NCBI GenBank assembly: GCA_946965045.2
Contig: OX337233.1
Location: forward strand, 310,001-374,000
DNA: 64,000 nt
Source of the DNA: Epithemia pelagica
Taxonomy: Eukaryota; Protista; Bacillariophyta
Direction: 5' to 3'
This document shows, piece after piece, positions 2,014 to 55,900 of the stretch. The notes under the pieces are model-generated. The model had not been told where the DNA came from and did no database searches. It worked only from the letters and a program-made list of their open reading frames with translations. The translations under genes and the position numbers were made by a program. Within the stretch, counting starts at the first letter, position 1. Each line of letters starts with the position of its first letter.

Positions 2014-3198
2014 TCAAGTTTCATCCTTCCCTTCATCACCACGGTGTGTATCGGGCCTTGCGCGTTTACGAGCTGATGTCGAGGTGGAAAAGTGCGAAAT
2101 GTCAGCATCTCGGATACCCATTCCTTCCCGGAACTGGTACCATTCGTTCTGAGGCTGCTCATAGAGTCGTCGAAAACACCACGTATTCTTGTCCATTAAT
2201 GGGAATGTCGCACAGGTACGATTGTCCAGTCCACCGATCACGGCAACATGATTGGCAACGGTCACCATACTGCAGCACCATCGTTGTTCTTGCAGTCGAC
2301 GAAGATTCCACACGCGGTTGCGAAGCGTATCCAAGACTTGCACACTTAAATTGCCTCGTCCTCCCGCCACCACCAGACAAGATCCCACGGCTACCATTGC
2401 ACAAAAACCTTGAGGGTTGGAAAGCACCGATTCAGAGTGAGTGGTCCAAGCGGACGAGAAGGAAATGACTGTCGTCAAAGAGTCGTCTTTTCTCTCCTCT
2501 GCAAAGTCCAAATACTCCACCGAATCAAGTATTTCGTCACTGTTTCGGCCTCCAACGACAAAGATGCGGTGTCCAACGACTGCGCTGTCTACGTATGATC
2601 GAGGAACAGTCATGGATGGTCCAGCAGTGACAATGTGATTCCTGGTATCAACAATATCCACCGACGACCAATAACGATTGCTGCGTCCACCCATTACAAC
2701 GATGTATCGGTTGTGCACGGCAACAGCACAACATCCCACTCGTCCCGTTGATAATCGACATGTCAATGTCACCCAACTGCATTTACGCGTGCTGCTTATT
2801 GTTAAGGAAGATTGTAGCAAATCATTGGCATCGATTCGTTCAATACAATCCAAAGTTACTCGATTGTATCCTCCCATCACGTACACGCCGCCATTGCAAA
2901 CAACAGCGGCATGTCCAGCACGTGTCTTGTCGATGGATGGTCCTTCTCGCCACTGCTTGTCTGGGTCCGATAGATTCAATACAAGAACGGAATCCGTGGC
3001 ACCTGGGGCTTGTCTGTAACCTCCCAACACGACGACGGTTTGTTCTTGGTTGTTATCGGTAGGATTCAGTACGACCGAAGCATGATAGTAACGCCATCCA
3101 CCCTCAAGAGGAGGCCAGTCCTCGAAATTCCATTCAGGTGACTCGTCTAACAAAACAAGGTCCGACTGCCATGCTTGTTCTCTCAACGTCGTGGGCAT
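2014..3198 (-). CDS. Kelch-repeat beta-propeller protein (K1)
   Basis: About six Kelch repeats (GG doublet, W/Y, R-x-x-H/C motifs). ATG at 3198 (MPTTLREQAWQS); frame stays open to 3366. C-terminal basic tail RKRAR. No BTB or F-box seen. Confidence 0.9.
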   Translation of the reverse strand: MPTTLREQAWQSDLVLLDESPEWNFEDWPPLEGGWRYYHASVVLNPTDNNQEQTVVVLGGYRQAPGATDSVLVLNLSDPDKQWREGPSIDKTRAGHAAVVCNGGVYVMGGYNRVTLDCIERIDANDLLQSSLTISSTRKCSWVTLTCRLSTGRVGCCAVAVHNRYIVVMGGRSNRYWSSVDIVDTRNHIVTAGPSMTVPRSYVDSAVVGHRIFVVGGRNSDEILDSVEYLDFAEERKDDSLTTVISFSSAWTTHSESVLSNPQGFCAMVAVGSCLVVAGGRGNLSVQVLDTLRNRVWNLRRLQEQRWCCSMVTVANHVAVIGGLDNRTCATFPLMDKNTWCFRRLYEQPQNEWYQFREGMGIRDADISHFSTSTSARKRARPDTHRGDEGKDET

Positions 3199-4512
3199 GG
3201 TTCCAAACAATGACTGCAGCGGATTTATGGGGATCGAGACCCTGTCTTGAAAGAGGCACGTAGGTTTGCTCTGTTGTTGTGATTCTGATGGGTGCGGACT
3301 GGAAGCACGACTGACTGCACGAAATGGATGGACCAAAGAGGGGTAGGAGCGTTCGTCACGAGACAAATCGTGACAGTTGCTTCGATCGAGCTGTTGTGGC
3401 TGACACTACTCTTGTTCCACGGTTGACCATTGCATCCTCGTTCGGCGTCTTTTAAGCATCAAAAGTCATCTGGAATTCATGATGCGGCGGTACGATGGTG
3501 GGTTGGAACTTGTACTTGAGATATGGCCGTCCACATTCCACATCGTCCATTGTCGTTGACCCGTTGCTCTCCACGCCACGAAACATTTCTAGCGGTTCGA
3601 ATACCCTTGACTGTTTCTCGTATTGTAGTCTAGTATTAAAGGGGCGGGGTGGAGCCATAGAAACTCCAAATCTTCGTCGGGCGAGAACAGACGGTTTACT
3701 GTAGAGTAAAAAGACCCCCCGGGAAATTTGGAGAGGGGAAAGAACGCTTGCCACATTGCTGGCGTAACTGTAGATAAAAGTTTGGCATATCAATTACTAG
3801 AGTATCTCAATGTCGAAAAAGGGGAATAACGGTGACTTAACCTCCAAAAAAATAAAAGGAGCTAAAAGGGCTAGAAAACAAGGAGGGGTGAAAAAATTGG
3901 CTTGTATCGATGTCACTGACTGTTCTGGGGGCATGCTGTACGACTATCCAGCAAAGAGGTAAATATTTTAAATATGGTGTCGCAGTTCTCCGGGTTTCCA
4001 CTGAAATCCTGGAAAACAAGGATTACCCGGTATTTTTGATTATCTAGCGGTTGTATGACGTAGATATTCCATTCGACTATATGTAACATTGTAACTGAGG
4101 TAATTCCATACGATAAGGAGATTGCGGAAGAAGAAAAGACGGCAAAAATAATGAATGATAGCGATGGGGCGTGGCTACAGAATTCTATTAGTCGTAAGAT
4201 AAGCCAGGTTCTCTGTCAATTTAAACAAACACAAATGATAGATATGTTGCTGGCTTTCTAAGAGAAGATATACTGATGGATTCGAAGCACATACTTCCGG
4301 GTCGAATGATTTCTTCGGGGAACTGCGGACTACGGAGAGACTGCCTCCACCCCGAATTCAAAACATTCGAGGTTCAGGCTTTTTGGTGCAAATCCATAAC
4401 TCTAAGTCGAATCCCCCATCGGGGGTGAGTCACGAGGATTAGTGACTGTGTAGTTTGAACACCAAAAGTACGACATACATGCGACCCGACTCTACTACGT
4501 ACATCGACGACG

Positions 4513-4518
4513 ATGACA

Positions 4519-4571
<53 letters not shown>

Positions 4572-4730
4572 TTGACCTCTCATCGAGCAATTTCACCAAC
4601 ATGTCTTTTCCGGAAACGATGGAAGATGACAACAACCATCAAGTGGCCTCGTCCAATCCGTGGCAATTGAATTGCGGTTGCCAAGATTGATCAACACTCA
4701 AGTCACAGATCAAGGAGCGCAAGTCATTCG
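4513..4730 (+). pseudogene. 5' remnant of the LRR-TIR-family partner gene, head-to-head with K1
   Basis: ATG ACA ACG(n), then MSFPETMEDDNNHQVASSNPWQL and, after a frameshift, LPRLINTQVTDQGAQVI. Compare MPLPETTMDVNNPEMNECDPYQL and LPRLTNTKATDRTAQAI in the intact gene. Confidence 0.75.
4521..4571. repeat. (GAC)17 microsatellite
   Basis: Perfect GAC run; corresponds to an expanded N-terminal poly-Thr of the remnant. Confidence 0.95.
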
Positions 4731-5639
4731 CGAGAGGTTTTGTATGGACCCTCAAGTTCGAATCGACACTGTGGTGGATGGTGGCTGCTCCGTGCCGTTG
4801 CCGTTCTGATTTCTGGATCCGTGCCACTGCGATAGCCTCGTTGGTCGATGTGGGATTTTACTCGCGGCGCATCAGTATATGTGGGCAACTCAACATTGCG
4901 AACCGGTTGGGTAAATCGCACTATTTCGGGCCTTGTCAAGGATTTGATGCACAAGGGTCACTGTGGCAATTTTGTCATGTCATTTGAATCGACACAGTCT
5001 AAAGCCTTTGTCAACACCCATAACGCTCCTGCGAACGGCACATGGTGCGGTGGCTCACTCGATTTACCAGGCATTACGGCATTCACAACAAACAGGAGAG
5101 CCCGCTCGATTTTTGCAACAACAAGGAAATGGCCGACAATGGTGTCTCATCAGTCATAGACAAGGAAGAGCCATATACTCCGTGCTGCATCGGTTACTTC
5201 GCGAAACCATGGAACCGTTGTTGTAGTCGGAATGGCGGGTTGGTGTGTACCGGCCTATCGACATTCCGTACCAGCTTCAACTGCAACAGCGGATGTTGAT
5301 GACGGCCAATGAAGACGTGGACCAAGTCTCGATTCAATCTCTTATTCTGAAACCACGAATCTCTCTTTCTTCAACGTTGTGTGGATAGTTGTCCGTGGAT
5401 CGTCCTCAGTCAAATCCTCTCCAATCAACTCTGGATGGGAGTTCGGCTTTGGAGACGATTGACAAGGTATCATCATCGACTGCTCGCAATGTCTCTTGGA
5501 TGGTTGGACAACAAAGGTTTTGCCGTTCATACCTGTGCAAGGGATCGTGGCACCATCTCCGATATTCAGTACTGATGGCATGTGTATGCAATCCGTGGTA
5601 GACGCCCGGTTGGTATCCGGCTCGATTACTCAAGCTTGC

Positions 5640-6015
5640 GTAGGTCCCGATTGGTACGAGGGTTTCATTACCGATGCCCATGCCGATGGAAGGTATAGTC
5701 TCGATATGTGGACAGGGCAAGTCGCTTTGATCCCCCTACCGTGATTGGAGAAACGATTCAAGTACGAGTCATCGATGACAATAATATGGACGAGAGCAAG
5801 AGACCGAAACAGCTACGTGGGTGGATGAAGATTGTCGTGTGATTGCGGTCGAGTGTAGTCGGACACATGGCAAATCGCGACGCCCCTTTTACAGTCCTGA
5901 CACATGGTGGTATACGACAGAGTTTGAGGCCGGTGAGATTTGGAACAAGATTGAATTTGGTGATATTCAGCACGCTGTCAGAGAAAAGAACGAGGCACGT
6001 CCTCTACAGTCATAG
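5640..6015 (+). pseudogene. Degenerate Tudor/Agenet-like coding remnant
   Basis: GPDWYEGFITDAHADGRYSL and PDTWWYTTEFEAGEIWNKIEFGDIQ resemble W-Y-x-G-x-I...D-G-x-Y...F-D-D-G-E barrel motifs. The paralog at about 41460 reads GPYWHLAVITNVYADGRYL. Motif recognition by eye only. Confidence 0.35.
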
Positions 6016-6386
6016 TGATTGTAGTTTGTTACTGTTGGAGTCCAGCAAAAAAAAGCGACTTGTGCCAAACCATCTCTTGAATCTGATTGGTAGAGGCTGG
6101 CAAAGCAATTCACACAGTGACAAAAACACTCAACACAAAGCACGTCTCTTTTATGTTCTTTGTCTTTTCGTGAAAGTCACGTTCTGCCGGACGCTGTATT
6201 ACATGATTGCATTTCTACTACAAGGATCCTGAATAGGTAAGAATGTCATGCAGAGAACAAGACAATGGTTTAAGAGCAAAGTGATTATTCTATAGTTTCG
6301 CCATTGTAGGGCATACATGCAACATGTTGTACATTTTAGGCTTATCCTTCCCTCGTTCATTACGGTGCGTATTGGACGTGCTTCAT

Positions 6387-6941: not shown

Positions 6942-8273
6942 CTAGTAGGCTTCATCCATCCCTTCATCACCACGGTGAGTATTGGACCTTGCGCGTTTAC
7001 GAGTTGATGTCGATGTAAAGAAGGGTGAGATATCTTCATCTCGGATACCGGCATTTTCAAGAGAATGATACCATCCGTTCGATTGGTGTTCACATAGTCG
7101 ACGAAAACACCACGAATTCCTATCCATTAGTGGCAATGTCGCACAGGAAGTAGTGCGCCATCCACCAATCACGGCAACTTGATTGGCAACAGTCACCATA
7201 CTGCAGCCCCAACGATCTTCTTGCAGTCCAGGAAGATTCCACACGCGGTTGCGGTGCGTGTCCAAGACTTCCACGGTTGAATTGCCTCGTCCACCCGCCA
7301 CCACCAGACAAGATCCCACGGCAACCACTGCACAAGGGCTTCGTCCATTGGAAAGCCTCAACTCCGACTGAGTGGTCCAGGTGGGTGAGAAAGAAATGAA
7401 TGACGAGCCAGTCTGCTCCTTTGTCTCATGATTGTCACAGGGTGTTGCATAGTCCAAGTACTCCACCGAGTCAACATTGCCATGCTCGCCATGGCCTCCA
7501 ACGACAAAGATGCGGTGACCAATAACCGCGCTGGTACAAAATCGTCGTGGAACAGTCATGGATGGTCCCGCAGTAACAGTGTGGTTGTTTGTATCAATAA
7601 TATCGACCGACGACAACGTTCGACCACCGCCATCGCCACCCATTACAAGGATGTATCGGTTGTGAACCGCAACAGCACAACATCCATTTCTTCTCGTCGA
7701 TAATCGACATGTCAATGTCGTCCAACTGCTCTCATGCGTGGTGGTGGTTGTCAAAGATGATCGAAGCAAATCATTGGCATCGATTCGTTCAATACAATCC
7801 AAAGTTACTCGATTGAATCCGCCCATTACGTAAACGCCGCCATTGCACACAACAGCGGCATGTCCAGCACGTGTCTTGTCCATGGATGGTCCTTCTCGCC
7901 ACTGCTTGTCTGGGTCCGATAGATTCAATACAAGAACGGAATCCGTGGCACCTGGGGCTTGTCTGTAACCTCCCAACACGACGACCGTTTGTTCCTTGTT
8001 GTTATCGGGATGATCAATTATGACCGTAGCATGATGCCAGCGCCATTCACCCTCAAGAATTGAGTTGACATAGCCTTGGCCTTGTTTGAATCCTCCCAAC
8101 ACGACGACGGTTTGCTCCTCGTTGTTATCGGTACGATTCAGTACGACGGAAGCATGATAGCAACGCCATCCACCCTCAAGAGAAGGCCAGTCCTCGAAAT
8201 TCCATTCAGGTGTCTCATCGTCTAACAGGACAAGGCCCGACAGCCATGCTTGCTTTTGCAGTGTCGTTGTCAT
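6942..8273 (-). CDS. Kelch-repeat protein (K2), chimeric, with an in-frame 41-aa duplication of blade 1
   Basis: 443-aa ORF from ATG 8273. Segment EGGWR...NSIL (123 bp) is followed by a second, divergent EGEWR...VLGG. Confidence 0.9.
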   Translation of the reverse strand: MTTTLQKQAWLSGLVLLDDETPEWNFEDWPSLEGGWRCYHASVVLNRTDNNEEQTVVVLGGFKQGQGYVNSILEGEWRWHHATVIIDHPDNNKEQTVVVLGGYRQAPGATDSVLVLNLSDPDKQWREGPSMDKTRAGHAAVVCNGGVYVMGGFNRVTLDCIERIDANDLLRSSLTTTTTHESSWTTLTCRLSTRRNGCCAVAVHNRYILVMGGDGGGRTLSSVDIIDTNNHTVTAGPSMTVPRRFCTSAVIGHRIFVVGGHGEHGNVDSVEYLDYATPCDNHETKEQTGSSFISFSPTWTTQSELRLSNGRSPCAVVAVGSCLVVAGGRGNSTVEVLDTHRNRVWNLPGLQEDRWGCSMVTVANQVAVIGGWRTTSCATLPLMDRNSWCFRRLCEHQSNGWYHSLENAGIRDEDISPFFTSTSTRKRARSNTHRGDEGMDEAY

Positions 8274-13558: not shown

Positions 13559-14770
13559 TCAAGTTTCATCCTCTCCTTTATCACCGAGGTGAGTATTGGA
13601 CCTTGCGCGTTTACAAGCTAATGTCGATGTGGAGAAGGGTGAGATATAAGCATCTCGGATACCCATACCTTCAAGAGAATGATACCATCCGTTCGATTGC
13701 TGCTCACAGAGTCGACGAAAACACCATGCATTCTTGTCCATTAATGGGAATGTCGCACAGGTAGGATTGCGATATCCACCAATCACGGCAACTTGATTGG
13801 AAACAGTCACCATATTGCAGCCAACACGGTGATTTCCGAATGGTGGAAGATTCCACACGTGGTTGCGCTTCGTATCCAAGACTTCCACGGTTGAATTGAA
13901 CCATCCTCCTGCAACAACCAGACAAGATCCCACGGCAACCATTGCACAAGAACTTCGTGCATTGGAAAGCACCAAATCAGAATTAGTGATCCAGGTGGAC
14001 GAGAAAGTACTCAATGTCAAGCCAGTCTGCTTCTTTGTCTCTTCATTGTCACCAGGCTTTGAAAATTCCAAATACTCCACCGAGTCAAGATAGTCAACAT
14101 TGTTTTGGCCTCCAACTACAAACATGCGGTGACCAATGACTGCACTGGCACACCATTGTCGTGGAACAGTCATGGATGGTCCAGCAGTGACAATGTGATT
14201 GTTGGTATCAATAATATCCACTGACGACAAATAGCGATGGTTGCAATAGCCACCCAACACAATGATGTATCGGTTGTGAACCGCAACAGCACAACATCCA
14301 TTTCTTGTCGTTGATAATCGGCATGTCAATGTCGTCCAAGGGCTCTCCTGTGTGGTGCTGGATATCAAAGATGATCGCAGCAAATCCTTAACGTCAATTC
14401 TTTCGATACAATTCAACGAACCTTGATTGTATCCTCCCATCACGTAGACGCCTCCGTTGCAAACAACAGCGGTATGTTCATCACGTGCCTTGTTCATGGG
14501 TGGCCCTTCTCGCCACTGCTTGTTCTCGCCCTCCAAAGTCATAACAAGAACGGAGTTGGTAGTATCATATTCTTCGTTGACTCCTCCCAGCACGACGACC
14601 GTTTGTCCCTTGTTGTCGTTGTGGAGTTCCTTTTCGGGATGATCAATTACGACCGTAGCATGATGCCGGCGCCATCCACCCTCCAGCGGCGGCCAATCGT
14701 TTTCATTCCATTCTGCTGTCTCGTCTGAAAGGAAAAGGCCCGACTGCCATGCTTGTTCTTTCAGAGTCAT
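13559..14770 (-). CDS. Kelch-repeat protein (K3)
   Basis: ATG 14770 (MTLKEQAWQSG); frame open to 14968; full set of blades; CKRAR tail. Confidence 0.9.
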   Translation of the reverse strand: MTLKEQAWQSGLFLSDETAEWNENDWPPLEGGWRRHHATVVIDHPEKELHNDNKGQTVVVLGGVNEEYDTTNSVLVMTLEGENKQWREGPPMNKARDEHTAVVCNGGVYVMGGYNQGSLNCIERIDVKDLLRSSLISSTTQESPWTTLTCRLSTTRNGCCAVAVHNRYIIVLGGYCNHRYLSSVDIIDTNNHIVTAGPSMTVPRQWCASAVIGHRMFVVGGQNNVDYLDSVEYLEFSKPGDNEETKKQTGLTLSTFSSTWITNSDLVLSNARSSCAMVAVGSCLVVAGGWFNSTVEVLDTKRNHVWNLPPFGNHRVGCNMVTVSNQVAVIGGYRNPTCATFPLMDKNAWCFRRLCEQQSNGWYHSLEGMGIRDAYISPFSTSTLACKRARSNTHLGDKGEDET

Positions 14771-27043: not shown

Positions 27044-27044
27044 G

Positions 27045-40780: not shown

Positions 40781-41701
40781 GCATGGACCCGCAAGTTCGA
40801 ATCGCTCCAATCTACTGAGAACAAAGATCGGCAAGAAGATACGAAAACTCTCGATGGGGAGTCACTCTTGCCATTGGGTCACCGTTGCCGCTCCGTAGAC
40901 GTGGCACTACGATTGCCTTGGTCGTAGACATTGGTTTCTCATGAGTCATCGACAATTAAGCCTTGAAATTGTTGTCTGATCGGTTACGCCATATACTCCG
41001 TGCTGCATCGGTTGCTTCGCGAAACGATGGAACTGTTGATGTTGTCGGAACGGCCGACTGACATGCCGTACCAACCTTGCCTTGCTTCAACTGCAACAAC
41101 GGCTGTTGACGGCCTCAATTCAGGCCTCAATTCAATCTCTCATTCCGAAACCAAGAATCTCTCTTTCTTTATCGTTGTGTGGATCTTTGTCCTTGGCTCG
41201 TCCTCAATCAAATCGTCTTGAAACAACTCACGAGGGGAGTTTGGTTTTGGAGACGATTCATGGACTGTTCGGAATGTAACTTGGACGGTTGGACAACCAA
41301 GGTTTGTCCTCCCGTTGGTAACAGTGCAAGGGATCTCGCTGGAACATCGTACCATGGCACCATCTCCGATTTCCATTATTGCTGGCATGTGAAATAGACA
41401 CGTAATATCCAACGACCTTGACCAAATGCCTGGTGGGTATCGGGTTCGATTGCACAAGTTCAAGGAGGTCCCTATTGGCACTTGGCTGTCATTACCAATG
41501 TCTATGCCGATGGACGGTATCTGCTCAAGAATTCAACGAACATGAAGTGGAGAGGGTGAGTCGTTTTGATCCCCCTGTACTGTGATTGGAGAAACTATTC
41601 GGTACCAGTGATGGATGACTATACATCGAGGACAGCCAGAGCACCGAAACAACCACGTGGGTGAATGAAGATTGTCGTGTTTTACAGTCCTGGCAATTGG
41701 T

Positions 41702-44700
41702 TGTTGGAATCTTCAATTGAGTCGCTCTTCATGTCGTGGTCCCGAATCAAGTCAGTCGCACAACGAGACAATGGGATGCAAACCGCATGGGAGGCGGTTA
41801 TAGCTCATCTAGGTCTTGGACCATCTCGATCTCATCTGGCATAACAACATTCTCTCAATCCTAGTCGTAATGCTCACTCTTTCTAAATCACTCAGTTTCG
41901 AAACCCTTTTGCATTACTTCTACGATTACCTTGCTTCTGTGCACAGAGGAGACCATCAGGGCCAATCTAGTGATCCAACATACTAGCTAGTATCGGTGAT
42001 TGCTTCATTGGTCCCCTTATCGATCGAAAGAGCGAAACTCGTGAGCACGGGATCAAGAAATCTGACGCTGTTGAATTGCTGAATCGAAAATCGGGACAGG
42101 AGTCTATCAGAACCACCAAGGTTTGAACTCTCTGATCGTGTGTTGTTGCTTTGTCGATTGTTTGACTGATATCATATCTATCTCATATCAATCATATCAA
42201 AATGGATCTTTCAAGTAGCGACAAGACCTCAACTACGATCAAGGTACCAACCTTTTCAGGAAAGAAGGCTGATTACCCCATTTGGTGGATGCGCTTCCGT
42301 TCTCATGCTCGTGTCCACAACTTCATCGGAGCTTTGTCCGATACACCAGAGAAGGAACTCCCAAGCACCGAACACGAACCAATTGACGAGTCGACAGACA
42401 GCGGAAAAGCCTCCAAGAAAGCACTGAATCGAAACGCCATGGCTGTTGCTTGCCTTAGCATGGCACTCCAAGCCGATGACGATTTGAAACTCGTGATGAA
42501 ATCCATCACATCTGACTGGCCAGGTGGTCGTGCTCACATCATCGTGAAAGGATTGTTCCGAAACTACAAAAGCGAAAACATAGCCGCCAAGATGCGAATC
42601 CGACAAGACGTGAACAAGATCTCCATGAGCAATACCATGAACCCCAAGATTCTTCGCAAGAAGATATCGCAGATTGAGAATCGCCATAACCATGAATTGG
42701 CTGACGACGATCTGGTAGCTATCGTGATTGAGAAAGCCGCACCGATCTACAGCACCATTGTTGCAACCGAACAGCGAGCAAAGGGAAGTGCCCTCACTGC
42801 AGATGACCTCATAGACGCGATGATGACCCAATGGAATCTACATCACGACGAAGATGATGATGGCGAGGATGGCACTGAATCAAGTCTCGATCAGTCCGCC
42901 AGTGGTGGATTGTCACTTCAAGTCACTCAAACAAATCCCGTCTGTCAAGCAGTCGGCGATCCCAATAGTGTTCCTCCACAGCCATTTGTTGTGTGCAATT
43001 TCTGCCAAGAACCAGGACATGGGTACTATCAATGCCCTCTTCGATCCCAAGCATCACAACAAGGAACCGGTACTGCATTGGCCGTTGGACCAGGACAGCA
43101 ACAATACCAGCAACAACAAGGATATCGCCCATACAACGGACAACAACAAGGCCAATGGCGACAGCCATATCAACAAGGCGATCGTCCACGCCCATACTGT
43201 GAGGATTGCAAAGTGTATGGCCATTCAACGCAGCGTTGCTGGGAGAATCCAGCTAATGCGCAATTTCGCCCACCCAATTGGACAAGTCGTCGCAATCGCC
43301 CTCAACAGGCTCCATCTCCAAGTCCTCCAACCAGTACACCAGCTCAAGACATCGCTACTGTTGTTGCGTCTAACACCACAACACGTCCGACAACTCCAAC
43401 CACTCCCAATGGACAGTCGACCCCATCATCAGAAACCCGTGTTGAGATGCTCATGAGCGGCATCGAATTTCCACATGACTTACAACTCCTTCGTGATCCC
43501 AACATCTGGATCGCGGATACTGGTGCTACACAGCACATGACTTCTCATACTCATGGAATCATCAATCTCCGACGACCAGAAGATCCTGTCAGTCTTGTTA
43601 TGGCCAATGATACCACAGAGAGCGCAACGGTAATCGGTGACTTACCAGGCATATGCTGCAACAGATACGGCTGCGAATTGCGGTCTGGTCAAATGTCCGG
43701 TGTCAATATCTTACCATCTACTGCTTTCAACCTGTTTAGCATCTCCAAGATGCTTAAACAGGGATGGTCCTTGAGTGGTTCGTCTGAAGCAATCATAATC
43801 ACCAAGGGAAGTATGAGTGTGACGTTCGACATTGTAATACCGACGCCTGACGGAATGATTTTCTGTTTGTATTTCAAGCGCAAGCAAGAACTTACCGGTC
43901 ATGAGATTTTCGGAGCATTACCTGACATTGGTCCCAAGAAACGACAAACCATGTCACTCCAGGACGCCCATGACAAACTTGGCCACATTGACATCCGCAA
44001 GATCAAACCAATAGTGGAACACCTTGGCTTTCAGTTGCAATCTGGAGAGATGGAGAAATGTGCTGCTTGTGCTGCTGGCAAAGCTCGTCGTAAGAATCTT
44101 CCTCGCTCTGACACTCATGCAAATTCCGAACCAGAAGATCCAAACGTCAATCGCATATACCTCGACATGAGTTCTGTCCGTCCCATCAAATCGCATCCAA
44201 CACCACGCAAGAATCAATGGCGAATGATTGTTCATGGCAGGACTCAACTAAAATTCTCAGCATTCTACGAGTCTAAGAAAGCAATGGTCGAACCGACTTG
44301 TGAATTTCTTCATCGATGGGAATCTAATGGACTTGGGGCGACTCATGTGCGTCTCGATAATGCCGGTGAAAATATTCTTCTTCAGTCGCGTAGTCAGTCT
44401 GCCGACTGGAAACTGAACCTTAACTTCGAATTCACTGCGCGTAATACCCCGCAACAGAACTCGCTTGCGGAAGTTGCAATTTCTACCATTGCTATGAGAG
44501 GTCGAGCCATGATGCATCGAGCAAATGTACCTATGGAATATCGCAGTCTATTGTGGACAACTGCCTTCGACACAGCCACATTATTAGATGGACTTGTAGT
44601 AATCGAACTGGATGGAGTCTCTAAAACACGATACGAACACTGGAGTGGGCAATTGCCCCGATTTGCGCATCATCTACGCACGTGGGGAGAAGCCGGAACT

Positions 44701-47700
44701 GTCAAAACTGCTACGGATACTACACAGAAGCTAGCAGACAAAGGGACCCATTGTATCTTCGTCGGCTACTGTCGAGATCATGCCGGGGATGTTTACCGCA
44801 TGTTTAACCCCCATACCAAGAAACTTCATGTGACTCGCGATGTAATCTGGTTGCGACGGATGTATTTTCTCCCACCGGAAAATCCACCACACTTGATGAT
44901 CACTCCTATACTACCACCTAATTCCAACTGTGATTCGGAGTTGCACCTCGACGGCGAAGACGACGCGTCCAATCGATCTAAGCCCTTTATTGAAGAGCTT
45001 GAAGACGATTCTCCAAACCAAAATATCGCGGACACTCCCATGGTCGAAACCATTGATCAAGCGACAGACGCCGATGAAAATGTGAGCGCAATCACTTCTG
45101 CTACACCTCGACAACATCAAGTCACGCGAACAGGTCGTCATATTCGTCCACCACGACGTCTAATTGAAGAGTATCAATGTGCTGGGATCAACTATAATGA
45201 GTTATCCCTTACACAGTCGGAAATCAACTACTATTCCTCCATGGCCGAACTGGGCCACGAAGACTCCGACTTCAGTGAGCAGCCTGAATCCGACGGCTCA
45301 CATGACCACCATGACTCAAGTGACGATGATTCAAGTAACTACGAAGAGATCCAAGAGGAGTCGAACCTTGACCATCACTCCGACATCAGTGCAGCCTTTC
45401 TTCATGCCGACCTTGTGACCGACATCAGCCATGCGTACCAACAAGTGCCTCTTGACCCCGAATACCAAGCTCCTGAATTCCCTGTTGATTGTGAAGCATC
45501 TGGCATGAGCCCCAACTCATCACCGTTTGCCCGAGAATGTGCACTCGTCGGTGCAGGATTGGGCGGAGGAATTCAAAACACCCGAGAGCTCCATGTTTTG
45601 ACATACGAGGAAGCCATCAATGGACCCGAGCGTGAACAGTGGCTTGAGTCCATTGAAAAAGAATACCAACGGATGATCGACAATGGTGTCTTTATCCCCT
45701 GTGATCCTGTCGAAGTCCCAGCTGATGCCAAGATTCTTAGCAATGTGTGGGCCATGAAAAAGAAAGCAAGTGGTGCGTTTCGCGCACGATTAAATGCCCG
45801 AGGGTACGAACAGGTCGATGGGGAGCACTATGACAGCCATGCCACGTTTGCTCCAGTGGCCTCCGAAATGACCATTATGATCATTTTTGTTTTGATCATA
45901 TTAGCGAATTGGGTAGTCCATGTAATGGACGTCAAGGGCCCATTTCTGCTTGGCGACTTCGAAAAGGATCGGAAGATGTGGATGACCATTCCGAAAGGAA
46001 TGGAGTCCAAATATCCTCCTGGTTGGTTGATCTTCCTTGGCAAGACTCTATATGGCACAAAGCAAGCCGCTCGTGCCTTTTGGAATAAGGTCCAGGAAGT
46101 CATGAAGCTTATCCAGTTCTTGCGCAACCGTGCTGATCCATGCCTCTACTTCGCATGGACTGCATTCGGCCTCGTCATTTGGCTCTCGTGGGTGGATGAT
46201 TTCTTGGTCTGTGGGTCCGAAGCAGGCGTCCTTCACTCCAAAGCAGCTATGAAGGAACACTTCGACTGCGACGATTGTGGTGAATTGACCGAGTACATCG
46301 GTTGTAAGGTTGATCTTGACCGCGAACAGCGCACGTGCAAGTTCTCGCAGCCCGTTTTACTGCAGAGCTTTTCCGACGAGTTTGATGTGCCTTCCACAAC
46401 GCAGAAGTTTGCTACACCTGCAGCTCCTGGGGAAGTTCTCAAAAAGGACGATGGCACGGATGAGTTGAACGCAACACAACAGTCCATGTATCGGAGCGGC
46501 GTCGGTAAATTGTTGCATCTCATGAAATGGTCACGTCCTGACATTTTGAACTCTGTCCGCGAACTCTCCAAATTCATGAAGCAAGGCACTCAGCATCATC
46601 TCAAAGCAATGTATCGGGTGATGCGCTACTGCATGGATACTCCATTGTGCAGTAAGATTCTGCGCCCGGTTGGTTGTTGGGACGGTACCAAGGAAGGATT
46701 TGAGTTTGTTATTCGAGGCCGTAGTGATTCCGACTTTGCCAAAGACCCCGACAAGCGTCATAGTGTCTCAGGTATTTCTGTTTTTCTCCAAGACGCGCCA
46801 ATTTCCGAGTCCAGTCGGATGCAAGATTGTGTAACTCTTTCCGTTAGCGAAGCCGAAATTGTCGCTGCTGTGGAAACAGGCCAACGCATGCTTTTTGGCA
46901 TGCGAGTCCTCGAACAGATGGGATTGACCGTGCAAAAACCCATGATCTTGCAGATGGATTGCAAGGGTGCCATTGCTCTGACACACTCGTGGAGCGTTGG
47001 TGGCCGCACTCGACACATCGATGTGAAATGGCATTTTCTTCGTGAGATGAAGGAGGAAGGCATTATTCATACCGTTTGGCTGCACTCACCTGACAATTCT
47101 GCTGATCTGTTCACCAAGAACCTGCCTGGTCCAGATTTCCGCAAGCATGTCTCTGTCTATTGCTCCAATCTTGATCCTGCTTGTAATGCCGACGACGATC
47201 CTGTTACTCCGACCACCAACAATCAAGGCGCTCACGTTGAACCGCATCATGGATCCGAAACCGCCATGCTTGTTTACCAAGGTCCTCTTCCATTTTGGCT
47301 TAAATGCTTTCTTCACACACGATCATCCAAGTGACTCAGCCCCAACAGAAATCCAGTACACCACAGTGAAACGCCCATTGTCGAACATGCATCAAATCCA
47401 ATCAAACAACAATATCATCAGTCAGAAATCAAAATCAACAAATCGAATTCAAATCGCATCAACATTTATCACTTACACATCATCACGAACATCCGAATCA
47501 GGCAGGGCATCACTTTCATCGTTCATATACACTCACACCATGCACACAAGACGATCTTTCAAAATTTATGACATCAAGGACACTGAAGAATTTGGTTTCT
47601 GTGGACATTCGAGCGACACAATTAGGCAGGGTGTTGGAATCTTCAATTGAGTCGCTCTTCATGTCGTGGTCCCGAATCAAGTCAGTCGCACAACGAGACA

Positions 47701-47910
47701 GTGGGATGCAAACCGCATGGGAGGCGGTTATAGCTCATCTAGGTCTTGGACCATCTCGATCTCATCTGGCATAACAACATTCTCTCAATCCTAGTCGTAA
47801 TGCTCACTCTTTCTAAATCACTCAGTTTCGAAACCCTTTTGCATTACTTCTACGATTACCTTGCTTCTGTGCACAGAGGAGACCATCAGGGCCAATCTAG
47901 TGATCCAACA
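41702..47910 (+). mobile_element. Ty1/copia LTR retrotransposon B, full length, 6209 bp
   Basis: 279-bp LTRs (41702-41980, 47632-47910) with 1 mismatch; 5-bp TSD TTGGT; PPT ATTAGGCAGGG; empty-site paralog at about 5890-5920. Confidence 0.95.
42202..47334 (+). CDS. gag-pol: Gag-Pol polyprotein of copia B, intact, 1710 aa
   Basis: Two CCHC knuckles (CNFCQEPGHGYYQC, CEDCKVYGHSTQRC), PR (IADTGAT), HHCC plus integrase (LDNAGEN, PQQNSLAE), RT (RARLNARG, WVDD), RNase H (SDSDFA, EAE, RTRHID). Confidence 0.95.
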   Translation: MDLSSSDKTSTTIKVPTFSGKKADYPIWWMRFRSHARVHNFIGALSDTPEKELPSTEHEPIDESTDSGKASKKALNRNAMAVACLSMALQADDDLKLVMKSITSDWPGGRAHIIVKGLFRNYKSENIAAKMRIRQDVNKISMSNTMNPKILRKKISQIENRHNHELADDDLVAIVIEKAAPIYSTIVATEQRAKGSALTADDLIDAMMTQWNLHHDEDDDGEDGTESSLDQSASGGLSLQVTQTNPVCQAVGDPNSVPPQPFVVCNFCQEPGHGYYQCPLRSQASQQGTGTALAVGPGQQQYQQQQGYRPYNGQQQGQWRQPYQQGDRPRPYCEDCKVYGHSTQRCWENPANAQFRPPNWTSRRNRPQQAPSPSPPTSTPAQDIATVVASNTTTRPTTPTTPNGQSTPSSETRVEMLMSGIEFPHDLQLLRDPNIWIADTGATQHMTSHTHGIINLRRPEDPVSLVMANDTTESATVIGDLPGICCNRYGCELRSGQMSGVNILPSTAFNLFSISKMLKQGWSLSGSSEAIIITKGSMSVTFDIVIPTPDGMIFCLYFKRKQELTGHEIFGALPDIGPKKRQTMSLQDAHDKLGHIDIRKIKPIVEHLGFQLQSGEMEKCAACAAGKARRKNLPRSDTHANSEPEDPNVNRIYLDMSSVRPIKSHPTPRKNQWRMIVHGRTQLKFSAFYESKKAMVEPTCEFLHRWESNGLGATHVRLDNAGENILLQSRSQSADWKLNLNFEFTARNTPQQNSLAEVAISTIAMRGRAMMHRANVPMEYRSLLWTTAFDTATLLDGLVVIELDGVSKTRYEHWSGQLPRFAHHLRTWGEAGTVKTATDTTQKLADKGTHCIFVGYCRDHAGDVYRMFNPHTKKLHVTRDVIWLRRMYFLPPENPPHLMITPILPPNSNCDSELHLDGEDDASNRSKPFIEELEDDSPNQNIADTPMVETIDQATDADENVSAITSATPRQHQVTRTGRHIRPPRRLIEEYQCAGINYNELSLTQSEINYYSSMAELGHEDSDFSEQPESDGSHDHHDSSDDDSSNYEEIQEESNLDHHSDISAAFLHADLVTDISHAYQQVPLDPEYQAPEFPVDCEASGMSPNSSPFARECALVGAGLGGGIQNTRELHVLTYEEAINGPEREQWLESIEKEYQRMIDNGVFIPCDPVEVPADAKILSNVWAMKKKASGAFRARLNARGYEQVDGEHYDSHATFAPVASEMTIMIIFVLIILANWVVHVMDVKGPFLLGDFEKDRKMWMTIPKGMESKYPPGWLIFLGKTLYGTKQAARAFWNKVQEVMKLIQFLRNRADPCLYFAWTAFGLVIWLSWVDDFLVCGSEAGVLHSKAAMKEHFDCDDCGELTEYIGCKVDLDREQRTCKFSQPVLLQSFSDEFDVPSTTQKFATPAAPGEVLKKDDGTDELNATQQSMYRSGVGKLLHLMKWSRPDILNSVRELSKFMKQGTQHHLKAMYRVMRYCMDTPLCSKILRPVGCWDGTKEGFEFVIRGRSDSDFAKDPDKRHSVSGISVFLQDAPISESSRMQDCVTLSVSEAEIVAAVETGQRMLFGMRVLEQMGLTVQKPMILQMDCKGAIALTHSWSVGGRTRHIDVKWHFLREMKEEGIIHTVWLHSPDNSADLFTKNLPGPDFRKHVSVYCSNLDPACNADDDPVTPTTNNQGAHVEPHHGSETAMLVYQGPLPFWLKCFLHTRSSK

Positions 47911-48115
47911 TTGGTTGTATACGACAGAGTTTGAGGACGGTGAGATTTGGGACAAGATTGAATTTGGTGATATTCAGCACGCTGTCAGAGAAAAGAACGA
48001 GGCGCGTCCTCTACAGTCATAGTGATTGTAGTTTGTTACTGTTGGATTCCAGCAAAAAAAGCGACTTCTGCCAAACCATCTCTTGAATCTGATCGGTAGA
48101 GGCTGGCAAAGCAAT

Positions 48116-48847: not shown

Positions 48848-50065
48848 CTAGTAGGCTTCATCCATCCCTTCATCACCACGGTGAGTATTGGACCTTGCGC
48901 GTTTACGAGTTGATGTCGATGTAAAGAAGGGTGAGATATCTTCATCTCGGATACCGGCATTTTCAAGAGAATGATACCATCCGTTCGATTGGTGCTCACA
49001 TAGTCGACGAAAACACCACGAATTCCTATCCATTAGTGGCAATGTCGCACAGGAAGGATTGCGGAGTCCACCAATCACGGCAACTTGATTGGCAACAGTC
49101 ACCATACTGCAGCCCCAACGATCTTCTTGCAGTCCAGGGAGATTCCACACGCGCTTGCAGTGCGTATCCAAGACTTCCACGGTTCGACTGGGTCGTCCCA
49201 CTACCACCAGACAAGATCCCACGGCAACCACTGCACAAGGGCTTCGTGCATTGGAAAGCCTCAACTCCGAATGAGTGGTCCAGGTGGGTGAGAAAGAAAT
49301 GAACGTCGAGCCAGTTTCCTTTTTTGTCTCATCACTGCGACATGGTCTTTCGAAGTCCAAATACTCAACCGAGTCAAGATTGCCGTCCTCGTTAAGGCCT
49401 CCAGCAACGACAAAGATGCGGTGACCAACGACTGCGCTGCCAAAAAATGATCGAAGAACATTCATGCTTGGTCCCGCAGTGACAGTGTGGTTGTTTGTAT
49501 CTATAATATCCACGGACGACAAATTACGATCGCTGTAGCCACCCATTACAACAATATACCGGCTGTGCAACGCAACCGCACAACATCCTCTTCGTGGCGT
49601 TGATAAGCGACATGTCAATGTCGTCCATTGGATCTCGTGTGTGCTGCTGGTTGTTAAAGATAATTGAAGTATATCCTTGGCATCGATTCGTTCCATGCAA
49701 TCCAAAGATCCTATATTGAATCCTCCAATCACGTAGATGCCGCCATTGCACACAACAGCGGCATGTCCTTCACGACTCTTGTTCATGGGCGGACCCTCTC
49801 GCCATTGCATGTCTGGGTCTGCCAGATTTAATAACAGAACGGAATCGAGACTGCCTGGATCTGCTTGATATCCGCCCAACACGACGACCGTTTGTCTCTT
49901 GCTGTTGCTATCTTTGTCAGTATCGAGATGATTTAGTACGACGGATGTATGATACTCTCGCGCTCCTCCCACAAGAGGCGGCCAGTCATTTTCATTCCAT
50001 TCAGCTGTCTCTTCCAAAAGGACAAGGCCCGACTGCCATGCTTGTTCTTTCAATGTCACGGACAT
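48848..50065 (-). CDS. Kelch-repeat protein (K8)
   Basis: ATG 50065 (MSVTLKEQAWQ); frame open to 50269; C-terminus nearly identical to K2. Confidence 0.9.
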   Translation of the reverse strand: MSVTLKEQAWQSGLVLLEETAEWNENDWPPLVGGAREYHTSVVLNHLDTDKDSNSKRQTVVVLGGYQADPGSLDSVLLLNLADPDMQWREGPPMNKSREGHAAVVCNGGIYVIGGFNIGSLDCMERIDAKDILQLSLTTSSTHEIQWTTLTCRLSTPRRGCCAVALHSRYIVVMGGYSDRNLSSVDIIDTNNHTVTAGPSMNVLRSFFGSAVVGHRIFVVAGGLNEDGNLDSVEYLDFERPCRSDETKKETGSTFISFSPTWTTHSELRLSNARSPCAVVAVGSCLVVVGRPSRTVEVLDTHCKRVWNLPGLQEDRWGCSMVTVANQVAVIGGLRNPSCATLPLMDRNSWCFRRLCEHQSNGWYHSLENAGIRDEDISPFFTSTSTRKRARSNTHRGDEGMDEAY

Positions 50066-51829
50066 GGTTCTTAACGTTTTGACCGCAGAATTTATGTGGA
50101 GTGCGTTTGCGGCTGTTGCGGGAGAGAATATAATAGAAGCATCAGGACTCTTAGAATACACGTGGAAGCTCTGGAGCCCAAATAGCGTCTGTCGTACGTA
50201 CGATATCGCACATAGACTTAATGACAGCACCACCATATAAGATGTATCTTTCCGCCAAAAGATGTGCAAATCCTATTCCCAATAACAAAAACAAAAACAA
50301 ACAATGGACAACATCCAAAAAAACAAGGCGTCGAAGCATCCTCATGTCTTTCTCGTTGACTAGCAAAAGGAAGTTGGGCAAACGACATTGTTCCATCCGA
50401 AAGCCATGTTACATGTTACATCAAAACGACCGACAGCCTTTTATAGAGCCAAGCCAGATGAGGACCCCACTGTCACGACAATTTAGAGAAACCAGCCTTC
50501 GGAATGAACAAAGCCAATTGTGGACGGGTGCATCTGCGGATGGGTCAGGTATGTACAGGATTGGAACAAGCCTCGAGTTTGGTCGACGGCCACTCAGCTG
50601 TGGTAGAACAACGAGTGGGGATGTTGCTTCCACCATTAACCACACACCAACAAGACACCTCCCTACAACGGCCACCACGAGCCAAGCTCTTCCCTGGCTG
50701 CATTTAGCAACCATAACAACTAGCACGACGACGATGGCCCAGCCACCAGACAATAGTAGCAGGACCATTGAGACACAACGACAAAGTCTCAACCACCCAA
50801 ACCACAACAACGGGCAACCGGCAACATCCACACCAACACTCTGGCACTTGCAAGTGGCACTGTTGCACCGAACCAATGACTCCCACCACCACATGGAACC
50901 ATGTTCCTCTTCCGCCTTGCAGCAACATGGCCTCAACTTCTGGTTGGTACCAGATGGTGTGTCTGTCACCACCAATGATGTGTCTTCGGCCACAAGCCAC
51001 CAAAGCATACAAGAAGGAAATCATAGTATCACGATCACAGGTGGCTCGCGATTGGGAGGCAATCAAACAACTCAGAACTAACGAGTCGCACAAGAAAACT
51101 GCAGAGATGTGCACTTTCTTGATTCATGTCTCGAACTGGCTATTCCGCATGGTCCAACAGTCATGATCTTTCGTGGTGACTTTGTGTCCTTGAGCGTTGT
51201 CGACCTCGGTAGACGCCTTTTGAAAATGGCCGACCCACTCATAAGAAACACAATGCTATCCAGATTCGAAGCGCACGTAGAGAGAGAAAGGATGCATCAT
51301 AGAAGCTACCAGCCAAACTTTCCAATACTCTCAAGCGCATGTTGTCGTTTGGTATACCGAGTTGGCCAAAAGTATGCTCAAACTGTCGACTTGAACCAAT
51401 GAAACACCGCAGTATGACTATTTATTTTGTATGCAGGAGAAGGGCAAAAAGAGCAACGGTGCGATACCGTGACCAACGTGGTCGCATGGCAATCCACGGG
51501 CACGAAGAAAGACGCAAAGGAAACATGGACCATCCAGACAAACGACAAACATAATCCATGGCAATTGCGAAGGCAAATATGACTCGATCTCTATAAGTTT
51601 ACAAGGAACCATGCTTTGGATACCCTCTGTTCCTTTCTCACCAAATCGTCCTTCCTCCAGTCCCCAATCTGCATTCTGCGAGATCCGATCCTGTCCACGA
51701 TAAACAAGAAACAGACACGCGAATTGCGCCATTTCGACAGCGACGAACAGAACCATTCAGGCACGACCGCCTCGGGCGACCACTGTTCCAACACGACCAA
51801 CTATTCATACGGTGTGGGTGGCTAGGCTT

Positions 51830-52960: not shown

Positions 52961-54178
52961 CTATGTTTCATCAGACCCTTTCTCATTTTGGCGCGTATTC
53001 TGCCTTGCTCGTTTACGAGCTGATGTCGATGTGCAGAAGGGTGAGATATCAGCATCTCGGATACCCATACCTTCCCGAAAATGGTGCCATCCGCTAAGTT
53101 GCTGCTCACAGAGACGGCGAAAACACCACGAATTCCTATCCATTAGTGGTAATGTCGCACAGGTAGGATTGAATCCACCAATCACGGCAACTTGATTGGC
53201 AACAGTCACCATATTGCAGCCATCGCGGGGATTACCAGATGGCCGGAGATTCCACATGCGGTTGCGGTACGTATCCAAGACTTCCACCGTTGAATTGCCT
53301 CGTCCACCCGCCACCACCAGACAAGATCCCACGGCAACCATGGCACAAGAACTTCGTGCATTGGAAAGCCTCAACTCCGAATGAGTGGTCCAGGTGGGTG
53401 GGAAAGAAATGAACGTCAAGCCAGTTTCCTTTTTTGTCTCAACACTGTCACAGGGTGTTGTGCTGTCCAAATACTCCAGCGAGTCAAGTTTGCCATTATC
53501 GTTACAGCCTCCAACGACAAAGATGCGATGGCCAACGACTGCGCTGCCAAAATATGACCGAGGAACAGTCATCGATGGTCCCGCAGTGACTATGTGGTTG
53601 TTTGTATCTATAATATCCACCGACGACAAATAAAGATCGTTGTAGCCACCCATCACAACAATGTGTCGGTTGTGAACCGCAACAGCACAACATCCACATC
53701 GGCCCGTTGATAAACGACATTTCAATGTCACCCAACTGCTTTTACGCGTGCTGCTTGTTGTAAAGGATGATTGCAGCAAATCGTCGTCATCAATTTGTTC
53801 GATACAATCCAATGGACCTTCATCGTATCCTCCCATTACGTAGACAACGCCATTGCACACAACAGCAGCATGCTCGTAACGTTTCTTGTTCATAGGTGGT
53901 CCTTCTCGCCATCGCTTGTTTGGGTCTGCTAGATTCAATACAAGAACAGAATTGGTGCCACCTTGGCGTTGATGCCAACCTCCCATCACGACGAGGGTTT
54001 GTCCCCTGATGTTGTTGTTGTTGTTGTTGTCGTGATCGGGATGATTAATTACGACCGTAGCATGATGATAACGCCATCCACCCTCAAGAGGAGGCCAATC
54101 GTTTTCATTCCATTCTGGTCTCTCGTGGGAAAGGACAAGGCCCGACTGCCATGCTTGTTCTTTCAGTGTCATGCTCAT
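52961..54178 (-). CDS. Kelch-repeat protein (K9)
   Basis: ATG 54178 (MSMTLKEQAWQ); frame open a further 173 codons upstream to 54697; RKRAR tail. Confidence 0.9.
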   Translation of the reverse strand: MSMTLKEQAWQSGLVLSHERPEWNENDWPPLEGGWRYHHATVVINHPDHDNNNNNNIRGQTLVVMGGWHQRQGGTNSVLVLNLADPNKRWREGPPMNKKRYEHAAVVCNGVVYVMGGYDEGPLDCIEQIDDDDLLQSSFTTSSTRKSSWVTLKCRLSTGRCGCCAVAVHNRHIVVMGGYNDLYLSSVDIIDTNNHIVTAGPSMTVPRSYFGSAVVGHRIFVVGGCNDNGKLDSLEYLDSTTPCDSVETKKETGLTFISFPPTWTTHSELRLSNARSSCAMVAVGSCLVVAGGRGNSTVEVLDTYRNRMWNLRPSGNPRDGCNMVTVANQVAVIGGFNPTCATLPLMDRNSWCFRRLCEQQLSGWHHFREGMGIRDADISPFCTSTSARKRARQNTRQNEKGSDET

Positions 54179-54703
54179 GGTTGCAAAGGTTTCCACTGCA
54201 GAATTTTTGAGGATCGAGGCTCTGTCTTGTAAGAGGCACGTAGGTTTGCTCTGTTGTTGTGATTCTGATTGATGCGGACTGGAAGCACGACTGACTGCAC
54301 GAAATCGATGGACCAAAGAGGGGTAGGAGCTTTCGTCACGAGACAAATCGTGACAGTTGCTTCGATCGAGCTGTTCTTGTTGACACTGCGCTCTTGTTGT
54401 TCCACGGTCGGAGTCCAGCATGACGGGTGCCTGTCGTTGTCGTGGTACTGGCTCAGGTCGTTTCGTCGCCCTGTAATGTTCGGGATGCGTCGTCCTAGTA
54501 GAACACAGTGTTTCGTGGTGCCTCTCGCGAAGAACCCCAGCAATACGTCTCACTTTTCTGCCATTGTCCGAGCCCTGCCAAACGCCCTTGGGAACTAGCA
54601 CATCACACAATAGGGCATGTGCTCCTCCGTCATCCTCTCGACTCGTACAACAAGAATGGCTGGCCGGGCAGTGCCTGCAAACAAGGTTTGCTTCCAATCC
54701 ACT

Positions 54704-55438
54704 CTAGTAGTAGAACAACAATTTATGGGCAGGCTTTACGGACCAAAAGTGGGACTCTTCGAGTCTTCTAGTACCGAACAAGAAGAAAGATGACAAAAAA
54801 AGTACAATCCAGTTGCTACCGGCCATGCAGCGTAAGCGGAGAATGCCCGTTACAGTGATAAGGGTGATGTTTTGTTGTTGTTGTTGGAATAAACAAACAT
54901 GCAAGGAAGGCTCCAGTCTGTCTGGTTGTTGGTTCCTTACGCATACCGAGTCAACGAGAAGCAAGGACACTGTGTACAGGCCGTGGATCTTCTTATACGT
55001 GTCGTTGGGGAGTGGTCGACCCTCCGTAAGGGCCACATCGACACGTTCAAAGTCGTACAAGGAACACTGTCCCAACGCCTCCAATGGATTCATGTTGGTT
55101 GTTTTGGGTTTCTTAGATTGGAGGTACAACGACTCAAAGGGTGTTTTCCACACCAACGTGGTGGCATAGCCCTGCAACTCCACCTCATGGTTGTCTGTCA
55201 CAGGTTCCAATTCGGCGTCCTCATACAAGATTTGATTGATGTGACGTTGCAATTGTCGGGCCACACTGGCCACCGTGTCGTCCGAAAAAGCCAATCGGTC
55301 GGCAATCGATCCCATGATGCGCCATTGAGCTGTTGTTGACACTGCTCTTGTTCCACGGTTGACCATTGCAACCTCGTTCTTGTAACCATCAAAAGTCATC
55401 TCGAGCGGTATCGATTGCTGTAAAGTTGCGCAGTGCAT
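54704..55438 (-). CDS. Hypothetical ORF upstream of, and in frame with, K9
   Basis: 244 open codons; central part (MGSIADRLAFSDDTVASVARQLQRHINQILYEDAELEP...) looks protein-like; a deleted paralog is at 40061-40348. No family recognised. Confidence 0.35.
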   Translation of the reverse strand: MHCATLQQSIPLEMTFDGYKNEVAMVNRGTRAVSTTAQWRIMGSIADRLAFSDDTVASVARQLQRHINQILYEDAELEPVTDNHEVELQGYATTLVWKTPFESLYLQSKKPKTTNMNPLEALGQCSLYDFERVDVALTEGRPLPNDTYKKIHGLYTVSLLLVDSVCVRNQQPDRLEPSLHVCLFQQQQQNITLITVTGILRLRCMAGSNWIVLFLSSFFLFGTRRLEESHFWSVKPAHKLLFYY

Positions 55439-55711
55439 GTTGTGATGATGGTGGCGGGGTGGAACTTGGAACTATTAGAGATACGGCCGTCCACATTCCA
55501 CATCGTCCATTGTCGTCGACCCCGTTGTTCTCCACGCCACGAAATATTCCTTGCGTTTCTACCTAGGTAGTATCTTTTACTGTGATAAAGATTGTAGGTA
55601 CAGGCACGTCCTTGACTTCGTGAATGACAAGTAAAAAAACCAAAAGCACGACACATATGCGACCCGACTCCTCACCCCCGCTGGGGACTACTCCAATACA
55701 TCCACGAGACG

Positions 55712-55900
55712 ATGACGGCGATGACGAGGACGACTTGACCTCTCATCGAGCAATTTGACCCACATGTCTCTTCAAGAAGCGATGATTGAGGACAACAACC
55801 ATCAAGTGGCCTTCTTCAATCCGTGACAATTGAATTGCGAGGCCCAGGATCAGTCCCAAAATGAAACGACGAATGGTCGTGGAGCACGTTGGGGAACAAT
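55712..55900 (+). pseudogene. 5' remnant of the LRR-TIR-family partner gene, head-to-head with K9
   Basis: MSLQEAMIEDNNHQVAFFNP*QL / RISPKMKRRMVVEHVGE, compared with RISPKMKQRMVEHFGKE. Copia C is inserted about 360 bp downstream of the ATG. Confidence 0.8.

Follow-up and report, generated by a model that had tools for sequence, protein, structure and literature searches.

In a 64,000-nt stretch of the genome of the diatom Epithemia pelagica (C6:310001-374000, contig OX337233.1; called the window below), five plus-strand sequences that begin like a gene for a leucine-rich repeat (LRR) protein with a domain of the Toll/interleukin-1 receptor (TIR) type stand head-to-head with Kelch propeller genes. 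Four of these five partners are probably copies of one long-dead gene-start fragment that was carried by a growing Kelch array, and only one is a real gene. An earlier sequence-only reading had taken the arrangement for repeated pairs of a Kelch sensor and an LRR-TIR executor. The evidence supports linkage of the Kelch and LRR-TIR sequences through common descent but not a pair that works as sensor and executor, and it goes against an obligate pair.

One open gene and four dead gene starts

The only open LRR-TIR gene in the window (32357-35638, plus strand) encodes a protein of 1093 amino acids (aa) with Pfam matches to LRR_6 (3.5e-15) and, at the C-terminus, to TIR (22.2 bits). It faces the open Kelch gene K6 (22037-23224, minus strand, 395 aa). 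The other partners, all on the plus strand, are remnants of the 5' end of such a gene. R0 (501-640), whose Kelch partner lies to the left of the window, had already been pointed out as a fifth remnant at 501 and was recovered with nhmmer (513-636, E 6e-17); it stops after 10 codons. In the remnant next to K1 (4513-4830), which opens within a (GAC)n run, the homologous frame is interrupted by stops, and the remnants next to K7 (40599-40900) and K9 (55712-56005) both have a TGA at codon 21. The ATGs at 4513 and 40599 lie within a (GAC)n run, and the frame from 4513 stops after 20 threonine codons inside it. None of the window remnants has an open frame, and from a conserved internal ATG (equivalent to Met16 of the intact protein) stops are reached after 10-29 codons.

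The remnant DNA is 70-78% identical to the start of the LRR-TIR gene over 115-186 nt in the longest piece, with E values to 1e-27, and the homology amounts to about 170-240 nt in all. Beyond the remnants (4830-6142 and the equivalent regions) no LRR-TIR homology was detected with paralog proteins, the closest paralogs or sensitive blastn, in line with the earlier remark that homology is clear only over the first 60-85 codons.

The four window remnants were compared with 21 further copies from the same genome (25 in all) and with 14 LRR-TIR starts, the segment having been located by profile (nhmmer) and aligned. The same TGA at codon 21 is carried by 20 of the 25 remnants, and the nearest intact gene (C17:3162483) has TGG. 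Three other remnants read through to a common stop at codon 30; most of those without the codon-21 TGA have other early stops, and four are without the conserved ATG motif. Compared with most intact genes, the remnants also have two deletions in common, one of 2 nt and one of 1-3 nt. In a maximum-likelihood tree, from which the near-identical copies C13a and C6_224k were left out, one branch with support 100/99 splits the 25 remnants from 12 intact starts; part of the 230-nt tree region lies beyond the homologous stretch and inflates this split, and the shared stop and indels lie inside that stretch. From the common stop, the indels and the single tree group it follows that the fragment was dead before it was amplified together with the Kelch unit. 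The four window remnants fall into different remnant sub-groups, and the array is thus a mosaic rather than a local tandem series.

If instead each remnant were a full-length LRR-TIR gene that had decayed independently in place, with birth and death of a partner at every pair, relics of other parts of the gene would fit well. One such relic does exist, a sixth one missed in the sequence-only reading: between K8 and K9 lies a degenerate LRR-TIR 3' piece with stops (linker and TIR start; about 51061-51500, plus strand), detected by tblastn with 39% identity over 66 aa (E 9e-5) and hit by a paralog as well. Frameshifted and chimeric LRR-TIR paralogs also occur elsewhere in the genome. However, copies on five contigs agree in their stop, in their indels and in the point where homology ends, and these shared lesions, together with the grouping of all remnants in the tree, largely refute independent decay, which we regard as very unlikely.

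The sheer number of copies also raises the possibility that the shared segment is not derived from a gene at all and is a mobile repeat or promoter fragment that resembles the LRR-TIR start by chance. Dozens of copies of the block at 4400-6200 are present in the genome, with 88-92% mutual identity, and the segment begins in a (GAC)n microsatellite. On the other hand, the segment matches the gene start in the same reading frame, with RISPKMKQRMV and LPRL.NT..TD..AQ.I as parts of the match, nhmmer E values reach 1e-63, and neither flanking terminal repeats nor target duplications are seen at the copies. Moreover, the copies keep a constant position and are found only inside Kelch arrays, always in array orientation. 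A chance resemblance is, in our judgement, exceedingly improbable.

The copied dead fragment that we favour would have arisen as follows. A soluble LRR-TIR family resides within the Kelch arrays, mostly in the opposite orientation, and in one ancestral unit an LRR-TIR gene would have stood head-to-head with a Kelch gene. A copy of this unit would have lost the LRR-TIR gene beyond its first 60-80 codons and gained the stop at codon 21, and at least 25 copies of the dead fragment, with its upstream spacer and an 18-nt motif, would then have been made together with the adjacent Kelch gene. The fossil is now carried by K1, K7, K9 and the Kelch gene to the left of the window. Only K6 faces an open LRR-TIR gene, which has recently been cut from its native spacer by a Ty1/copia element, copia A. 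The proposal of an ancestral repeat unit undergoing birth and death therefore holds for the block of shared descent (Kelch, spacer and LRR-TIR start) and for the visible decay, but not for separately decayed partners, since one dead fragment appears to have been amplified.

Spacers, the 18-nt motif and the question of a pair

The distances from Kelch ATG to partner start given earlier, 1315 bp for K1, 1246 bp for K7 and 1534 bp for K9, were reproduced from the Kelch ATGs, the plus-strand MTTT starts at 4513 and 40599 and the homologous point at about 55712. From K6 to the LRR-TIR ATG at 32357, also an MTTT start, the distance is 9133 bp, which is reduced to about 1115 bp after removal of copia A (6299 bp plus a 4-5 bp duplication) and of a 1714-bp inverted-repeat element, so the earlier net estimate of about 1130 bp holds. 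Copia A is inserted 17 nt before the LRR-TIR ATG. The empty site is seen in two paralogs that are 99% identical here (C13:3119973 and C6:224775), where the native upstream region runs straight into the ATG. The window LRR-TIR gene has thus been parted by 6.3 kb from its own spacer and from K6. Transcription from the 3' long terminal repeat (LTR) of copia A, which points in the same direction, could still reach the gene.

An 18-nt motif, CGTCCATTGTCGTCGACC, recurs in the spacers on the plus strand. As the earlier reading had it, there are three exact sites and one with a single mismatch at 3544 (3544-3561), and none is expected by chance. The exact sites are at 262 (262-279, 251 nt before R0), at 25685 (25685-25702, in the upstream region native to the LRR-TIR gene and, with copia A disregarded, 356 nt before its start) and at 55504 (55504-55521). 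Genome-wide, 28 sites with at most one mismatch were found, every one inside the arrays and in array orientation. An unselected survey allowing up to two mismatches recovered the motif at 7 of the 14 LRR-TIR starts, at a distance of 312-391 nt before the start, and at 16 of the 25 remnants, where the distance is mostly 200-253 nt; in shuffled sequence the best match had 5-7 mismatches. The motif is exact upstream of paralogs that are about 65% identical in protein and have flanks that barely align, which makes it a fair candidate for an element of the LRR-TIR promoter, judged from sequence.

Searches of the whole genome gave about 48 LRR-TIR pieces with about 15 gene starts, nearly all of them near the same contig ends as the Kelch genes and on the opposite strand; matches on C5, C16, C18, C8 and C13:117k may lie outside the arrays. 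At 10 of the 14 starts checked a divergent Kelch gene lies 0.16-2.8 kb upstream, and the K6 pair of the window is a further case. Two of the other four starts are without a Kelch gene within 7 kb, the one on C16 has only a distant Kelch gene on the same strand, and on C20 the most diverged LRR-TIR paralog (34-45% identity) alternates with same-strand Kelch genes. In another assembly in the European Nucleotide Archive (ENA) the equivalent contig repeats this same-strand order, at an array's inner edge and beside ordinary CRAL_TRIO and aquaporin genes.

The divergent neighbours and the array-bound motif are what would be expected if Kelch and LRR-TIR genes made up a co-regulated two-gene immune module, with the variable Kelch propeller as sensor of a ligand, LRR-TIR as executor, a shared bidirectional promoter and the remnants as dead pairs. 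The catalytic-type glutamate of the TIR domain and the distinct 5' flank common to the Kelch genes K1, K6, K7 and K9 point the same way. Against such a module, Kelch genes greatly outnumber LRR-TIR genes: among 1214 first-look candidates in the genome at least 95 Kelch loci were scored (68-84% identity; the count is a lower-bound estimate), as compared with the about 15 LRR-TIR starts, most Kelch genes stand without such a partner, and half of those in the window are without one. The remnants go back to a single origin, and their death preceded their spread. The Kelch gene adjacent to an LRR-TIR gene is 57-70% identical to K6, which is the family background, whatever the identity of the LRR-TIR genes (34-80%), and only in the youngest duplicate is it closer (88%, compared with 99.5% for LRR-TIR). 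This is not the pattern of co-evolving pairs. In addition, the deep paralog on C20 has its Kelch neighbours on the same strand, no Kelch sequence was found within 10 kb of six family loci in Epithemia clementina (see below), and the LRR-TIR protein already has a sensor-type domain of its own. We consequently consider the two-gene module unlikely, and the repeated sensor-executor pairs of the earlier reading were not borne out.

Since the orientation of the array is uniform, any gene in the opposite orientation faces a Kelch gene head-to-head by construction. With homologous spacers in addition, the arrangement is one event inherited many times and not repeated evidence. Similarly, most pairs are one fossil copied many times, and repeated adjacency in a duplicating array is for that reason not independent evidence of a functional pair.

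Some points nevertheless weigh against the copied dead fragment, among them the inflated tree split and the lower-bound nature of the Kelch count mentioned above. The divergent Kelch gene at 10 of 14 starts is one, and the 18-nt motif, kept at a similar distance before diverged paralogs, could reflect selection on a shared promoter. Three sequencing runs were compared with 30500-36400 as possible expression evidence, and genes, LTR and intergenic sequence were covered alike by short unitigs whose depth follows copy number; the runs are therefore DNA and uninformative on expression. It is also conceivable, though quite doubtful, that the spacer with the 18-nt motif is a true bidirectional promoter, that the hypervariable stand-alone Kelch propellers serve a few LRR-TIR NADases as exchangeable adaptors or decoys that bind ligands, and that the dead starts are kept as a regulatory region of the Kelch genes. 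If true, this would be an immune system of many sensors to few executors in a diatom.

Paired plant NLRs (RRS1/RPS4, RGA4/RGA5 and Pik-1/Pik-2) resemble the locus in that two immune-type genes diverge from a short spacer within a duplicating and decaying cluster, and among solved structures the TIR domain predicted here appears closest, by sequence and by a low-confidence model, to that of RPS4. Unlike in these pairs, neither partner has an NB-ARC domain, and one of them is a bare Kelch propeller. Nor is there a 1:1 ratio or co-divergence of the partners, orientation is not kept in the deepest paralog, and the linkage is absent at the six loci compared in the only other named species with homologs, E. 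clementina.

The LRR-TIR protein and its relatives

The TIR assignment is based on several lines of evidence. The Pfam match (PF01582) is just above the cut-off (22.2 bits compared with 21.3, E 1.4e-4) and covers only profile positions 1-84 of 179. In a weak match to the RPS4 TIR domain, WCIAEL of the LRR-TIR protein aligns to WCVREL of RPS4, and all 14 family members compared, among them those of E. clementina, have the WxxxE glutamate (residue 988). An AlphaFold2 model of the domain has a mean predicted local distance difference test (pLDDT) score of 50 with the second half unmodelled; when this low-confidence model was used in Foldseek, the top matches were nearly all TIR domains (RUN1, RPS4, RPV1 and AbTir), with E values of at least 0.018 and TM scores of 0.27-0.37.

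Neither NB-ARC nor NACHT was found by Pfam, which gives Kelch alone in one partner and LRR plus TIR alone in the other, and the LRR-TIR sequence shows no evident membrane span or signal peptide. The protein would act alone, as a sensor through its LRRs of ribonuclease-inhibitor type and as an effector through a TIR domain with the glutamate of NAD-cleaving TIRs. Soluble TIR effectors without a nucleotide-binding domain, such as plant TIR-only/TX proteins, bacterial Thoeris ThsB and AbTir, offer a parallel, as a TIR domain with the WxxxE glutamate here ends a sensor-like repeat domain. They differ in that the TIR predicted here is C-terminal to about 20 LRRs of ribonuclease-inhibitor type, and only its first half is modelled with any confidence.

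The nearest named relative of the LRR-TIR protein is a hypothetical protein of E. clementina (32% identity). In an exhaustive profile-free search of 1.8 billion representatives, relatives at the family level were found only in ENA assemblies and in E. clementina. Of six loci in the latter species, three hold a full-length LRR-TIR gene, one an LRR-ankyrin gene close to a separate TIR gene, one an LRR-only gene and one a TIR-only gene. Absence of Kelch linkage in LRR-TIR homologs elsewhere had been named as refuting the pair, and no Kelch sequence was found within 10 kb of any of the six loci (tblastn with six Kelch queries, E up to 0.1). Ten open reading frames (ORFs) next to the first locus were likewise without Kelch in Pfam scans. 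At JBGMNV010000510.1 the LRRs are followed by ankyrin repeats instead of a TIR domain, and a stand-alone TIR gene lies about 8 kb off on the other strand.

To our knowledge, the innate immunity of diatoms is almost unknown. We found no paper describing a subtelomeric Kelch cluster with LRR-TIR genes, and the array with its LRR-TIR genes is, as far as its sequence tells, an interesting and apparently undescribed candidate immune region. A lineage-specific cluster of hundreds of variable Kelch propellers with LRR-TIR genes that have a catalytic-type glutamate is a good place to seek diatom immunity. The targets shift, however, away from the remnants and towards the few intact LRR-TIR genes (without copia: C13:3116695-3119973 and C7:349102-352395) and the 18-nt motif.

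The subtelomeric Kelch array and its mobile elements

The genome comprises 60.5 Mb in 23 contigs; the published E. pelagica assembly is 60.3 Mb (PMC11167328). The window, with an even composition of 46-51% GC, sits inside a subtelomeric Kelch array that extends roughly from 20 to 385 kb from one end of C6. The array consists of tandemly and segmentally copied units, each with a stand-alone gene for a Kelch propeller of about 400 aa that is read toward the chromosome end. Kelch loci occupy ends of C6, C9, C10, C11, C13, C17 and C18, and every one of them points to the contig end. A database search with Kelch gave 609 clusters, of which the best 120 are ENA proteins with about 62-97% identity.

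Blocks of 99% identity are common to different contig ends. A 99% identical copy of the window LRR-TIR gene and its flanks lies, inverted, at the right end of C13 (C13:3116695-3119973), which is the opposite end type, and C6:142102 and C13:3084680 form another such twin; blocks have thus apparently been exchanged between different chromosome ends. A chimeric LRR-TIR paralog, C6:224775-227733, is 99% identical to the window gene in residues 1-425 and in the upstream spacer and 59-63% identical in the remainder, which suggests gene conversion or unequal exchange among members of the array.

These features are reminiscent of subtelomeric contingency families (Plasmodium var/rif, trypanosome VSG and yeast families), which grow by segmental duplication and ectopic exchange. 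Common to both are hundreds of fast-diverging, uniformly oriented copies at several ends, many pseudogenes and chimeras, young retrotransposons and 99% identical blocks between ends. In contrast to these families, the array belongs to a free-living photosynthetic diatom and the Kelch propellers look cytosolic and are not surface antigens. We know of no switching or silencing for this diatom Kelch array.

The minus-strand ORFs of the window are Kelch propellers, with 3-4 stretches of Kelch_1 per ORF (E 1e-23 to 6e-35), and the Pfam scan found no F-box or BTB domain in them. A conserved start, M..TLKEQAW, places the ATGs at 3198, 8273, 14770, 19414, 23224, 39353, 50065 and 54178. Besides K6, the open genes are K1 (2014-3198, 394 aa, Kelch_1 2.7e-26), K2 (6942-8273, 443 aa), K3 (13559-14770, 403 aa), K5 (18275-19414, 379 aa), K8 (48848-50065, 405 aa) and K9 (52961-54178, 405 aa). 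K4 (16824-17846) lacks its 5' part, and K7 (38161-39353) is a pseudogene whose frame is broken by a premature stop that follows codon 264. A tenth Kelch gene (C6:373867-374958), also on the minus strand, runs beyond the window and is represented by its 3' end only (63870-64000).

The sequence upstream of K2, K3, K5 and K8 is unrelated, and no LRR-TIR start or remnant was found there. In K1, K6, K7 and K9 about 180-215 nt directly upstream of the Kelch ATG are conserved and open in frame (…SRASSPHPSESQQQSKPTCL…), and this stretch may serve this Kelch subtype as a 5' untranslated region or as an alternative extension of the N-terminus. Between K7 and K9 the likeness upstream of the ATGs covers about 540 nt (39354-39900 and 54179-54717).

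Three full-length Ty1/copia elements lie on the plus strand of the window. Each has two LTRs with TG..CA ends, is flanked by a clean target-site duplication and encodes a gag-integrase-RVT_2 polyprotein. Copia A (26041-32339, 6299 bp, with a target duplication of 4-5 bp) has LTRs of 276 bp that are 98.9% identical. Copia B (41699-47911) sits in the block that follows the K7 remnant and has LTRs of 283 bp with 99.3% identity, the target duplication TTGGT and an RVT_2 match of 7e-36. Copia C (56074-62216) starts 68 nt beyond the K9 remnant and has LTRs of 212 bp with 99.1% identity, the target duplication TACTC and an RVT_2 match of 6e-35. At the LTR end of copia A, depth is about 35-40 times as high as over the gene's single-copy part, indicating that the LTR is abundant in the genome.

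The 1714-bp element between K6 and the LRR-TIR gene (23677-25390) is non-coding and non-autonomous; its ends are perfect inverted repeats of about 53 nt, its interior is T/G-rich and of low complexity with 16-nt periodic repeats, and its ORF had no match in Pfam. Spacing is the same in the paralogous pair at C6:224775, and the element is therefore probably present there too. The three young copia elements and the inverted-repeat element show ongoing turnover.

Pfam scans of the ORFs between the Kelch genes (23960-24781, 25494-26165, 50221-51081, 997-1611 and others) gave nothing meaningful. The one at 50221-51081, a plus-strand ORF of 286 aa, starts 156 nt from the K8 ATG and runs into the degenerate LRR-TIR 3' relic; a 68% identical copy adjoins a Kelch gene on C17. 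At 62614-63469 a 429-bp unit is present in direct tandem duplication with 97.7% identity. It belongs to the 3' flank block of the last Kelch gene, which recurs downstream of K1, K3, K6, K7 and K9.

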